Of a DNA stretch of 64,000 nucleotides, positions 11,610-49,673 are shown one piece after another. Source of the stretch: Andalucia godoyi And28 (lineage: Eukaryota; Protista; Jakobida); NCBI GenBank assembly GCA_009859145.1, contig VRVR01000026.1:93397-157396 (forward strand). Reading direction: 5' to 3'. A program made the translations under genes and the position numbers. Each line of letters opens with the position of its first letter. Position 1 is the stretch's first letter. The notes under the pieces are model-generated. The model saw nothing but the letters and a program-made list of their open reading frames with translations. It had not been told where the DNA came from and ran no database searches.

Positions 11610-11999
11610 CCGTTGAATAATAACACGTCATTGTCATGCATCCGGAAGTACACATAAACAGACACGGTCAATACTGGCCGACACTAGCACGTTGCTGTGA
11701 CACAGGAATTCGTGCTTGCGCGTAGCCATCTATCATCCGTTCAGCGCACTGCCAAGAGGCGAACTTCCAAGACACGATCTCCAATCCTCGGCACGCAGGG
11801 TAGCCAACCCCAAGCAGAAGCATCGAAAATCCGCGCGAACACAGTTTGTGGCCCTTCACTCGTCAGCACTCTGCTGCAATGTACATCAATCTCTGCAGTC
11901 AATTCCTGCGTTCTGGCGTCCCAGCCAACTGGAGCGGAGTCATCGTCATGGATGAAAAATGATTTTTTCTACTGTTCGTTTGCAACTGCATTAATCGCT
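11610..11999 (+). mobile_element. IS607/Fanzor-derived element, family 1, copy D (left end; 3'-truncated)
   Basis: 11610-11781 is near-identical to the left ends of the copies at 23481, 34669 and 49673 (CCGTTGAATAATAACACG...). The extent beyond 11781 is uncertain. No right end found. Confidence 0.8.
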
Positions 12000-12131
12000 T
12001 AAAACCTTTCAGTTTCAGTATTTCATATTGGTGTTGTTATCGCCGTCGCCATCTCCCTCCTCCTCCTCCTCTTTTTTCTTCTGTTATGGATTTTATTTGC
12101 ATTGTTGCAGCGCCTCGCAAATGATCGATCA

Positions 12132-12248
12132 TCAGGGACTTGTCTCACCGGCAACTTTTAATAGGAGCTTGCCAATACAAGCCCAACGGCGGAGCGTTTG
12201 AGTGGAAACTTCGCAGCGCTTTCGGGTCGTTGCCACAGCTTCAAATAT
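12132..12248 (-). mobile_element. IS607-type TnpA MerR-like HTH remnant (third lineage)
   Basis: Minus-strand translation IFEAVATTRKRCEVSTQTLRRWACIGKLLLKVAGETSP*. VSxQTLRRWxxxGK is the N-terminal HTH signature of IS607 serine transposases. Confidence 0.6.
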
Positions 12249-12655
12249 GGAGTGAACCGCACTGAGGCATCACAAAATGCGAACTGGCGTCTGTAAAAGC
12301 ATTTTAAAAATCAACAAAAATCAATAAAAATCAATAAAAATCAAAAAATCAAAAGAGAACGTGACGGGGAAGCTATCACAGACACTTCCTAGTTGTTGCA
12401 CATTGCATCAATCACTCAGATGTCCCGACCATCAGATTGCTGTTTCTGTGAAGAAGCTCCTGCCCTTTCTGATTATCCGTGACCTGCGGATATTGAATGC
12501 ACCAACCTGTACCGGTGTTGTTGGTTTCTTGTGCGCCAAAAAAAAAAAAAATACATTGCAAAAGTCTTTTCTGCCCACAGGTGTTCAGGTTTCAATCGAA
12601 AGACGACGAAGAATCCTCAACTACAAAAAAAATTTAATTTCAATTTTATTTTAAA

Positions 12656-13579
12656 ATGTCGGTGACCACCACGCAAGCGCTTGTGTCGGTTCTTGCACTC
12701 ACATTGTGCGTTGCGGTTGCAAATGCCTCGATTCCTTCAAGATATGCAAACAAATTGCTTGCCGTTGTCTATGATCCGGAGCATCTGATGAATGGCGCCG
12801 TTGTTCTTGTGGATCCCTTGACGGGGAAGTCTGAGCAGCTGGCTATGTACGCCGAGAGTGTGGACATTCTCGAGTCTGCACTGGATCTGAAGAGTGGAAT
12901 CTATCACATGATTTCGTCGGATGGCGATGCTGTGTTTTCCGAAATGTTCAATCTGACGACTGGGTATCTCGCTGGAAGACTGCCCATCAGCGGAAGCCCA
13001 ATGAATGTTGTGTTTGATGACAAATTAGAGAAAATGTATGGCCTTGATTCGACGCCGGATTCCATCTTTATGGCCCAAGTCGATCTCAGTGGGATGGAGA
13101 CGCACGTTGCATCGCTCAAGTCGGTCATTGGACTTTACGGAGATGTGCAAGCCTACGACCCGGTGCACCACACGTACTATTTTATTGGCGACGATTTGAA
13201 CAATGCGCCGTGCCTTCTTGGAGTGAACGTGGCTGCCGGAAAAGTGGTTTCGAATGTGTCGATTGCGGACACGCCCTCAATGATCTATGACGTGGCGCAC
13301 AGTCGATTGGTTGGGCTGAACGGATCCATGGCAGGGGTGCTGAATCCAAAGACAGCTTCTTTTACGCCCCTCCCCGAATCTGAAGTTGTGGAAGGCATCA
13401 TCGCACTGCATAGCATTGACGCATCCAATGGAATCGCCTATGTGGTATTGCAAGACTATGAGAAGCAAAAGATCATTTCAATTGATCTGGAGTCGGGCAA
13501 GATCCTGTCGTCTATCTTCATTGACTTGCAGCTTGCCTATGTTCATTTCATCCCGTCCTCTGCAACAGAGCCGCTGTGA
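12656..13579 (+). CDS. Secreted protein, probable beta-propeller
   Basis: Signal peptide (LVSVLALTLCVAVANA) followed by repeated four-strand units (e.g. AYDPVHHTYYF, IDASNGIAYVV, IDLESGKI). Confidence 0.65.
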   Translation: MSVTTTQALVSVLALTLCVAVANASIPSRYANKLLAVVYDPEHLMNGAVVLVDPLTGKSEQLAMYAESVDILESALDLKSGIYHMISSDGDAVFSEMFNLTTGYLAGRLPISGSPMNVVFDDKLEKMYGLDSTPDSIFMAQVDLSGMETHVASLKSVIGLYGDVQAYDPVHHTYYFIGDDLNNAPCLLGVNVAAGKVVSNVSIADTPSMIYDVAHSRLVGLNGSMAGVLNPKTASFTPLPESEVVEGIIALHSIDASNGIAYVVLQDYEKQKIISIDLESGKILSSIFIDLQLAYVHFIPSSATEPL

Positions 13580-13881
13580 ATGGCATCCATGTGTTCCACC
13601 GATCAGTGCAACAGACTATCATTCTGATCAAAATGTAAAATGAAATATAAACGTGGGAGAAAAGCAGTCATGAAAAGCAAACTTCCTACCATACACATTT
13701 TACCTTCATATTATCTATTTTTAAAAATAAAAAATAATAAAAAGAAAAGAAGGGGAAGAAAACAAAAACAAAAACAAAAGAAAACAGGAAAGCAAACAGA
13801 AGAAGGTGGTCAATTACAAACCGTGGATTTCCATAATAATCCAGCAGAGAACGAACTCTCGCGTCACGTAGCTGCGGTGGC

Positions 13882-48540: not shown

Positions 48541-49069
48541 GTATTTTTCTGTTGTCCCGCCCACCATGCTTGTTTGTTTCTTTCAGGCTCGCTAGCACGA
48601 TACCAAACAACAGCAACAACAACAACAACAACAACAACAACAACAACAAAAGAAACGCAGCACCTGAAAACAACATCGCTTTTTCACGAGTTTGCCGATT
48701 CCCTGGAAAACCCGGGGCAAATTCGAGTGGCCGCGAGTGTCAGTCGTCATCGACATCCCGCAATTGCTTCTGCTCTGCGCTTCTCCGCCACCTCCTTCAT
48801 CATCGTCCTCGGATCCTTATTCTATGAAGTGAGAACGTTCGCGCCTGCATGAAACACAGTGTTAGAGAACGACGCGATGGTGGAATACGAAAAAGGAAAG
48901 ATTCCGACGGCAGCCTCGATAGGAGGTTTTCATCTGCAGCGGCTCCGCATCGTGAGCGTGAAGAGCAGAAACAAACCTACGCAAAAAAGACGGAGAAAGC
49001 AAGCCAGACTTTACAAGTTTGCATGTTTTCACAAGGGATCGTCCAACAACCCTTCGCACCACTCCCACC

Positions 49070-49156
49070 TCTCTCTCTCTCTCTCTCTCTCTCTCTCTCT
49101 CTCTCTCTCTCTCTCTCTCTCTCTCTCTCTTTCACACACACACACACACACACACA
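49070..49156. repeat. (CT)n plus (CA)n compound microsatellite
   Basis: Read directly; ends about 70 bp from the right end of element copy B. Confidence 0.95.
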
Positions 49157-49224
49157 TTTCTTTATTATTATTATTTTTAGTCCAATGCTTTCTTATATAT
49201 AAATATTATTAAGTATCACGTTTG

Positions 49225-49345
49225 CGCTTATATTATACACTGAACATGCTGCATATCTACGAACAGATATGCATATTCAATCCTTGCATCCCGTTGCCGG
49301 GAAGGAGATCGGCCACAACACGCCTCACGGCGTTCTTCAGATGGA
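49225..49345 (-). ncRNA. Putative Fanzor omega-RNA scaffold (copy B)
   Basis: Lies between the RuvC-III codons and the right end. Hairpins acgcc-GTGA-ggcgt, cccg-GCAA-cggg and tgcatatct-gttcgt-agatatgca. Boundaries and expression are inferred. Confidence 0.6.
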
Positions 49346-49673
49346 TGTTCCGCGCTCCGTTCCCAATCTCGATCAATCGGTGAGCCACCTTCTCAGCGTG
49401 ACACGTTGTTCCTGAGAAGGGTGCATTTTTTTGATTCTGACGGCCCTAGCAGCAGGCGCTTTCGTGTCCTCAGTTGCAGCGATTGATGCACCTGGAGATA
49501 CGAGATCGTGTCTTGGAAGTTCGCCTCTTGGCAGTGCGCTGAACGGATGATAGATGGCTACGCGTAAGCACGAATTCCTGTGTCACAGCAACGTGCTAGT
49601 GCCGGCCAGTATTGACCGTGTCTGTTCATGTGTACTTCCGTACGCATGACAATAACGTGTTTTTATTCAACGG
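49225..49673 (-). mobile_element. IS607/Fanzor-derived element, family 1, copy B (least-deleted 3' region)
   Basis: Matches copies A and C plus an extra 86 nt (49283-49368) encoding W/NGARNIHLK after IDRD (one extra G) and two GNRA-capped hairpins. Confidence 0.92.

Follow-up and report, generated by a model that had tools for sequence, protein, structure and literature searches.

What are the short repeats that recur between the genes of one stretch of the genome of the jakobid Andalucia godoyi And28, how did they come to be there several times over, and do they point to an RNA-guided nuclease system in this protist? The stretch comprises 64,000 nucleotides (nt) of contig VRVR01000026.1 (GenBank assembly GCA_009859145.1; positions 93,397 to 157,396, forward strand); it is referred to here as the window and numbered from its first letter. 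An earlier note, made from the letters of this DNA alone, had assigned the repeats to IS607-type transposons with a TnpB-like Fanzor2 nuclease. They are very probably two related families of non-autonomous, internally deleted derivatives of such transposons, whose ancestors encoded the serine recombinase TnpA(Ser) and a Fanzor2/TnpB protein. In the original layout the tnpA gene would have been followed by that of Fanzor2/TnpB, and a guide RNA (ωRNA) would have been encoded at the right end.

Self-BLAST together with a repeat finder recovers exactly six copies in two families (Table 1), at the places where the earlier note had put them, and the strand assigned to each is the one that reads the TnpB-like remnants. 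The flanks are all unrelated and the alignments end abruptly at the element termini. Copies B and C of family 1 are the most alike, with five transitions and one 3-nt indel over 364 nt (1.4% divergence); a near-identical pair with just these differences had been reported before, but as A and C. Copy D is 97.5–97.8% identical to B and C, and copy A is 96–97% identical to the other members of family 1, whilst a and b of family 2 share about 93% identity in their right halves and 85% in their left halves. All six copies are intergenic, as had also been stated. Their overlap with open reading frames (ORFs) of at least 150 amino acids (aa) that have coding evidence is zero, and the sole ORF of that length to overlap any copy is one of 159 aa (37942–38421, plus strand) that runs antisense within copy b.

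The identity of the elements is most firmly established by the pseudogenised nuclease C-terminus in copy b. It reads CRLRLVTEEYVSKTCGRCG...CCPSCKCTLDCNWNGARNI, interrupted by one stop and two frameshifts, and the translation contains both VTEEYVSKTCGRCG and CPSC...NWNGARNI. Against Pfam PF07282 (Cas12f1-like_TNB, the former OrfB_Zn_ribbon) it scores 31.2 bits, where the gathering score is 26.3, and its best NCBIfam match is IS607_TnpB. Searches with tblastn align it to the Fanzor2 of ACa-1, an element of Acanthamoeba castellanii (47% over 53 aa, E 1.4e-8), and to that of an uncultured metagenomic element, L089 (E 1.2e-8), and it matches a custom Fanzor2 profile, built from 38 giant-virus Fanzor2 ORFs and ACa-1, with an E of 1.4e-7. 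The claim that these zinc-ribbon and RuvC-III sequences are of TnpB origin is thus well founded. The catalytic RuvC-III motif DRD is itself mutated, to DCN in b and to DCD in a.

Family 1 seems to retain a scrap of the other end of the same gene. The motif sought there was the WED strand R-x-Y/F-P-x-x-x-Q-x-x-x-L-x-x-W. The translations of B, C and D contain the peptide RIKKMHPSQEQRVTLRRW, and VRIKKMHPSQEQRVTLRRWL aligns to profile positions 155–176 (the rlyPtkeqkkiLkkWf motif), where KMRKICVFPMAQQKTLLKCW of ACa-1 also aligns. The peptide proposed as an N-terminal TnpB/Fanzor motif is therefore present and falls at the correct position of the profile; the remnant is too short for window-wide significance, its E being 2.2 across the window and about 1e-3 per segment. 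By tblastn the remnant matches the N-termini of two metagenomic Fanzor2 genes, that of locus L093 (50% over 20 aa, E 0.035–0.049) and that of locus L156, and in both of these the motif stands at the expected distance from the C-terminus.

Traces of the recombinase gene are fainter. Copy b has a helix-turn-helix (HTH)-like remnant 5' of the TnpB remnant and on the same strand, in two collinear pieces that align to positions 15–28 and 40–54 of an IS607 TnpA profile. Its identification as tnpA is weak: the window-wide E is 0.17–0.8, Pfam gives no match at the site and the hand-corrected remnant has no tblastn match among 240 fetched loci, whilst a targeted test gives p 8.5e-5 at profile positions 14–54, on a frameshift correction chosen by eye. 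A better candidate for the MerR-like TnpA remnants of the earlier note lies outside the six copies, in a seventh, single-copy relic (relic E). This is the best match in the window to the custom TnpA profile (E 0.02); it also matches Pfam MerR, below the cut-off (E 0.0088), the TnpA of L089 by tblastn (E 0.004) and the TnpA N-termini of 16 fetched loci. A search for the boundaries of relic E gave weak, unconvincing look-alikes only, and a possible right-end look-alike, ...GGTTTTAAGCG, ends at 11996 on the minus strand nearby. Just upstream of the relic, in its own sense, a 10-bp tandem repeat consists of five units of TAAAAATCAA (12305–12352).

The order of these parts is collinear with IS607: left end, HTH where present, N-terminal motif, zinc ribbon and RuvC-III, structured 3' region and right end. 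More than 80% of the nuclease gene has been deleted, the parts for the RuvC-I aspartate (DPG) and for the RuvC-II glutamate, whose C-terminal shift is typical of Fanzors and pro-Fanzors, are gone from every copy, and so is the catalytic domain of TnpA. With stops, frameshifts, a mutated RuvC-III and no intact Fanzor or TnpA gene in the 64 kb, the suggestion of a live, uncharacterised RNA-guided nuclease system is unsupported, and Fanzor2 is in any case already characterised. As B and C diverge by so little, recent activity of an autonomous source copy is nonetheless plausible on sequence grounds.

The termini provide the second line of evidence. The left end of both families is (A)CCGTTG and the right end is AGTGTAYAATRTWRGCG; this 17-mer occurs five times in the window, only at the five right ends, where 0.63 occurrences would be expected by chance, and the complete copies finish ...TA(G/A)GCG. 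None of the five complete copies has terminal inverted repeats (TIRs), on comparison of the left end with the reverse-complemented right end (p 0.69–1.0 against shuffles), or a target-site duplication (TSD), the flank duplication being 0–1 nt. A miniature inverted-repeat transposable element (MITE) of the type with TIRs and TSDs was rejected on these grounds. The left junction reads (A/G)C-CG-TTG... and the right one ...(A/G)G-CG, and the CG is present at five of the six left junctions (copy C has CA, a CpG transition) and at all five right ends. Copy A has no right-end motif nearby, and a search for a matching right end gave weak, unconvincing look-alikes. The description of the elements as internally deleted derivatives that keep both ends, which the shared termini and the nested junctions described below bear out, does not extend to this copy.

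The internal deletions themselves reveal how the copies are related. One identical junction, which fuses about 20 N-terminal codons to the RuvC-III region, is found in B, C and D. A further 81 bp (49283–49363, minus strand) are present in D and deleted from B and C, with breakpoints at GATTG pentamers that indicate microhomology, whilst copy a equals copy b minus 300 bp (38103–38402), deleted at a short imperfect repeat. The deletions therefore form a nested series in which D leads to B and C, and b leads to a. Since the same deletion junctions recur at different loci with unrelated flanks, it is the already-deleted forms that have been copied. Hence the copies appear, from these junctions, to have been moved in trans by a helper enzyme inside a eukaryotic genome; independent decay or segmental duplication would leave a different signature.

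Between the coding remnants and the right terminus lies a structured region. Over the last 100–125 nt, family 2, copy D, ACa-1 and L089 fold in a common order: a conserved GGGxCCUACCCC block with a small hairpin comes first, then a middle hairpin and a long terminal hairpin, and lastly a tail of 10–15 nt that ends (A/G)GCG. The terminal hairpins occupy the same position in both families, ACa-1 and L089 although their sequences are unrelated, and the right ends fold more stably than shuffled sequences do (z -1.5 to -2.6). RNAalifold pairs GCCUAC in the block with GUAGGC in the tail; in copy D the 81-bp segment absent from B and C holds a GCCGAU block, the proposed partner of the right-end tail. 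Across five sequences, 83% of the cells of this block-tail helix are paired, as against 17–45% when it is slid, and three cells are compensatory, with such changes in ACa-1 (C-G to U-A), L089 (C-G to G-C) and D. The pairing resembles the guide-adjacent pseudoknot of the right-end element RNAs (reRNAs) of TnpB (PMC10711439). More speculatively, family 2 and copy D may preserve in this module a relic of a Fanzor2 ωRNA scaffold. The presumed ωRNA region, which the earlier note took to be kept throughout, is thus retained whole by family 2 and in part by D; B and C have lost the block and keep 58 bp, that is the terminal hairpin and tail, and A has lost the whole right end. Rfam gave two incidental matches. 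A permissive match to a long non-coding RNA was judged to be chance, and a sub-threshold match of the family 2 terminal hairpin (37899–37929, minus strand) to CRISPR-DR12 (21.2 bits, where the gathering score is 37; E 0.12) is probably chance too, though curious given the relationship between TnpB and Cas12.

Table 1. Element copies, coding remnants and terminal hairpins in the window (positions numbered from its first letter)
Feature	Position	Strand	Remarks
Family 1 copy A	11610-11781	+	172-bp left-end fragment; departs from the family after 11781
Family 1 copy B	23116-23481	-	Complete mini-element; left end 23481, right end 23116
Family 1 copy C	34669-35031	+	Complete mini-element; right end 29 bp from the stop of a COG3-like ORF
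Family 1 copy D	49225-49673	-	Longer derivative, with 81 bp more of the 3' region
Family 2 copy a	18641-19102	+	Shorter derivative; 234 bp of the left part and 236 bp of the right, joined
Family 2 copy b	37867-38634	-	Longest derivative, 768 bp
Pseudogenised TnpB/Fanzor2 C-terminus, copy b	38008-38166	-	TSKTCGxCG...CPSC zinc ribbon and RuvC-III (DCNWNGARNI)
CPSCKCTIDCDWNGARNI remnant, copy a	18885-18968	+	
RuvC-III remnant, copy D	49332-49377	-	IDRDW/NGARNIHLKN, frameshifted
N-terminal Fanzor motif remnant, copy B	23187-23246	-	
VRIKKMHPSQEQRVTLRRWL, encoded in copy C	34901-34960	+	
Possible IS607 TnpA N-terminal MerR-like HTH, copy b	38278-38412	-	VSVTPATLRK / KIRSIHVRSHRMYCLADVERAI, split by a frameshift
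Relic E, IS607-TnpA-like HTH	12135-12269	-	Seventh, single-copy; EVSTQTLRRWACIGKL; opposite strand, 354 bp from the truncated end of copy A
Family 1 terminal hairpin	49240-49280	-	Followed directly by the right-end tail of 15 nt; B and C retain it
Family 2 terminal hairpin	37880-37922	-	Before the 13-nt tail; equivalent in copy a at about 19047-19089

Relatives of the encoded remnants are widespread. A pattern scan returned 216 from IMG/VR, mostly on giant-virus contigs that include chloroviruses and a pandoravirus, 103 from metagenomes and 226 from prokaryotes, the last being almost all filamentous cyanobacteria (Microcoleus, Oscillatoria, Calothrix and Hormoscilla), often with many copies per genome. 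In many of the relatives examined an IS607 TnpA is encoded immediately upstream, and the viral and metagenomic loci contain 27 distinct IS607-type TnpA ORFs on the strand of the Fanzor2 match, most of them upstream of it. The protein closest to a chimeric query of N-terminus and C-terminus is a 148-aa metagenomic fragment (P0001, on contig L002) that is 59–64% identical. At the DNA level, BLASTN of the elements against all fetched loci finds similarity over only about 55 nt of coding sequence, to L002 and L089, and the viral, metagenome and prokaryote collections scanned hold no other relatives of this kind.

The two elements that compare best with those of the window are ACa-1 and L089. ACa-1 and ACa-2 come from Acanthamoeba castellanii and are Fanzor2 elements of the IS607 type (Bao & Jurka 2013, PMC3627910; Gilbert & Cordaux 2013, PMC3673617), and the ends of ACa-1 were defined by Bao and Jurka from two copies (PMC3627910). 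Its left end, AACCATT..., corresponds to (A)CC(G/A)TTG of the window copies, and its right end, ...TTTAAGCG (in longer form ...TTTAAATTTAAGCG), to ...ATAAGCG/TAGGCG. ACa-1 likewise has no TIRs or TSDs, shares the 3' layout of three hairpins and a tail, and is identical over a 22-nt stretch at the WNGARNI codons. Unlike the window copies, which are deletion derivatives of 172–768 bp with dead coding scraps in a different, intron-poor protist host, it is an intact, autonomous-looking element of 2,675 bp, with TnpA and a 603-aa Fanzor2, present in two copies. L089 (JGI metagenome contig Ga0180220_1016621) is an uncultured, full-length element with IS607 TnpA and Fanzor2. No other locus among the 220 fetched has the right-end motif TGTACA...TAGGCG in common with the window copies; L089 ends ...GGTGTACAGGGAGAACTCTAGGCG. 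As in the window, a terminal hairpin precedes its tail and the block can pair with the tail, here as GCCUAG with CUAGGC, a compensatory change relative to the window, and its TnpA gives the best match to relic E. In contrast to the window elements, L089 is intact, GC-rich and single-copy, and its DNA similarity to them is confined to the short coding stretch. The match of the termini to those of ACa-1 and L089 probably places the window families in a sub-lineage of IS607-type Fanzor2 elements that resembles these two.

A number of observations weigh against this interpretation or parts of it. Neither an intact Fanzor2 nor an intact TnpA is encoded in the window, no TnpA remnant is seen in family 1 and that of copy b, as noted, is statistically weak. 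A word-indexed search of 5.8 billion proteins found only one metagenomic match, the fragment that is 59% identical; this collection includes at least some predicted proteins of the source organism (from eukprot), and the negative carries little weight, as annotation frequently misses transposon genes. No Rfam family matches, either with gathering thresholds on the whole window or with permissive E-values on two elements, and the score of the block-tail helix is reached by 45 of 500 shuffles of the five sequences, so that the covariation is suggestive only. The left end of copy C reads CCA and not CCG, and what is taken for the exact boundary, core dinucleotide and target-adjacent motif (TAM) could equally be conserved element sequence. 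Moreover, a 72-aa C-terminal fragment matches cyanobacterial IS607-type TnpBs (46–66% identity, E around 1e-17) as well as eukaryotic and viral ones, and the substitutions among B, C and D are not distributed as simple neutral decay would have them. The last two points each feed an alternative explanation.

Given that the cyanobacterial proteins equal the best eukaryotic, viral and metagenomic matches on the 72-aa fragment, the elements could descend from a recent transfer of a bacterial, for instance cyanobacterial, IS607/TnpB element and not from the Fanzor2 lineage of eukaryotes and giant viruses. Phylogenetic placement from a fragment equally close to both groups is impossible, and the assignment to the Fanzor2 clade consequently rests on the host and on the termini. 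These speak for the eukaryotic side: both ends and the architecture of the 3' non-coding region resemble ACa-1 and L089, whereas the Hormoscilla copies examined end ...TGTATCTG, unlike the window, and the closest protein, P0001, lies on a contig with an apparent spliceosomal intron. As Yoon et al. place Fanzor2 beside such bacterial IS607 TnpBs, the distinction is also one of degree. A recent bacterial origin is accordingly regarded as improbable.

The distribution of substitutions raises the further possibility of co-option, in which the host would use some copies as, for instance, intergenic elements with a regulatory or RNA-producing role. Nine of the 12 variable sites among B, C and D fall in the first 130 nt and three in the last 54 nt, with none in the approximately 195 internal columns that are shared (rough p ~1e-3), and the substitutions are nearly all transitions. 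The intergenic position of every copy and the better conservation of the right half of family 2 would also fit a host function. Set against this, the sample is very small, copy A is truncated, the position and orientation of the copies relative to neighbouring genes are inconsistent, and an intergenic location is equally expected from purifying selection against insertions into genes. Co-option is thus considered very unlikely.

Just as little is to be said for the view that a few full-length insertions gave rise to the copies by independent decay or segmental duplication, with no mobilisation in trans. Segmental duplication was invoked by Gilbert and Cordaux (PMC3673617) for multi-copy IS607 fragments in eukaryotes, for the transposition of which they found no evidence. 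In the window, however, the flanks are unrelated right up to the termini, on which ground segmental duplication was rejected from the self-BLAST, and independent decay would require three loci to have gained the identical N-terminus-to-C-terminus junction of B, C and D, and two of them the second one of B and C, which is implausible. The least credible alternative is an unrelated transposon family, such as a DDE-transposon MITE or a Helitron fragment, with TnpB-like peptides that are there by chance or capture, for although the N-terminal and HTH motifs are individually non-significant window-wide and other transposon superfamilies are known to have captured Fanzor genes (PMC3627910, PMC10711439), the five complete copies have neither TIRs nor TSDs, the zinc-ribbon/RuvC-III match exceeds the curated Pfam threshold, the remnants are collinear with IS607, and the termini match ACa-1 and L089, both of which have an IS607 TnpA.

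If the repeats are IS607/Fanzor2 derivatives, their junctions can be read in the light of the bacterial elements. In bacterial IS607 systems TnpA(Ser) excises the element as a circle and integrates it at a matching dinucleotide (PMC6188088, PMC10690162, PMC10711439). The target, or TAM, is TGGG and the RNA scaffold ends UCGG (PMC10690162, PMC10711439), and because of this ending the intact element is not cut. The elements compared, IS607 of Helicobacter pylori, ISXfa1 and the IStron of Clostridium botulinum (PMC6188088, PMC10711439, PMC10690162), have TnpA(Ser) followed by TnpB, no TIRs or TSDs, the same dinucleotide at both junctions, and an ωRNA scaffold that ends at the right end, with the guide read from the flank. 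As the window junctions read CG on both sides, it is proposed that the core dinucleotide is CG and that the target/TAM is the (A/G)CCG at the left junction, and that the base at -3 allows the right end, GGCG, to avoid self-cleavage. The -3 difference between TAM and right end, TGGG against UCGG in bacteria, would thus have its counterpart in (A)CCG against GGCG in the window. At position -4 some copies have A and others G, and this base would therefore seem to be part of the flank and not of the element. The bacterial elements differ in having GG as their core, in their prokaryotic hosts and in activities that have been demonstrated experimentally, whereas those of the window are known from sequence.

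The Fanzor2 elements of Mimivirus (IS607/ApmFNuc) and of chloroviruses (ISvNY2A/ISvAR158) (PMC10530073; loci L006, L041, L046 and L049) belong to the same protein family, have the IS607 layout and possess a conserved, structured non-coding RNA of about 200 nt that runs to the right end. They differ from the window copies in lying in viral genomes with intact genes, in the NGGG TAM of ApmFNuc and in the TA...TA ends of the AR158 elements. Three Fanzor2 copies in the chlorovirus AR158 record 641509451 (L041, L046 and L049) have TA at both ends (tatcgac..., ...aactta). The core dinucleotide hence appears to differ by sub-lineage, being TA in these, GG in mimivirus and bacteria and, as proposed, CG in the window.

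The history of the elements may be pictured as follows. TnpA from an autonomous copy outside the window would have excised the elements as circles and integrated them by recombination at the matching core dinucleotide, with neither TIRs nor TSDs resulting. More speculatively, transcripts that continued into flanking DNA could have served a trans-acting Fanzor2 as guides to empty sites. The present copies would be neutral, decaying fossils. A bolder version holds that the mini-elements are natural minimal substrates of an IS607 serine recombinase that acts in trans in a eukaryotic nucleus, with crossover at CG and a 58-bp right end that suffices, and that family 2 and copy D are guide-RNA-only satellites whose ωRNA module directs a Fanzor2 from another source to empty sites flanked by (N)CCG, where cleavage would skew inheritance in the satellites' favour. 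This is a speculative proposal to which only a small chance is given. If true, it would describe a eukaryotic, serine-recombinase counterpart of the bacterial palindrome-associated transposable elements (PATEs). These and similar protein-less IS200/IS605 derivatives retain the two ends and, in many cases, the guide RNA (Meers et al. 2023, PMC10055086) and, like the window copies, are minimal, non-autonomous and dependent on TnpA and TnpB in trans. PATEs depend on a Y1 HUH transposase, have single-stranded hairpin ends and live in bacteria, whilst the window elements are of the serine-recombinase type, in a eukaryotic nuclear genome, and any ωRNA function of theirs is putative.

Fanzor2 has been known in IS607-type elements of protists and giant viruses since 2013, and in 2023 it was demonstrated to act as an RNA-guided nuclease (PMC3627910, PMC3673617, PMC10530073, PMC10711439). 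Its nucleases have been characterised biochemically, and the window reveals neither a new class of system nor a live nuclease. What is modestly new is the evidence of copying: the nested derivatives and their sharp boundaries without TIRs or TSDs point to trans-mobilisation in a protist nucleus, and no description of protein-less, end-keeping derivatives of eukaryotic IS607 elements was found in the literature searched. The conserved CCG.../...GCG junctions yield a testable prediction of core dinucleotide and TAM for this sub-lineage, and the smallest copies (363–366 bp, with a right end of 58 bp) delimit what the transposase requires. An intact partner, should the rest of the genome contain one, would make a candidate for a compact RNA-guided nuclease with a C/G-rich TAM.

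The setting of the elements is that of a nuclear, gene-dense and intron-poor eukaryotic genome with about 50% GC. ORFs of 150 aa or more that begin with ATG make up 77% of the window. The products of the long ORFs, which lie on both strands, are a diacylglycerol kinase, ABCA half-transporters, PGAP2IP, COG3, a sedolisin, a FYVE protein, a Vps34-type PI3-kinase and a kinesin; a search of the window for tRNA genes returned none. Six of ten ATG-to-stop ORFs from the window are exact entries of the protein collection, with eukprot as their source, and are singletons at 90% identity. Two ABCA-type half-transporter paralogues (13882–16632, minus strand, and 31790–34465, plus strand) are inverted relative to each other, 15 kb apart, and share an 81-bp DNA match of 83% identity (14360–14439 with 33788–33867). 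Long compound (CT)n(CA)n microsatellites occur at 49054–49165, which is 60 bp past the right end of copy D, and at 63795–63991. The closest homologue found for the Vps34 protein (54% identity) is encoded on a 12.4-kb contig from Logan SRR15116022 (L001), about 1.9 kb from a COG3 gene with one gene between them. In the window Vps34 and COG3 are 12 kb apart, with other genes and copies b and D in between, and the two arrangements amount to partial synteny with a distant relative of the source organism.

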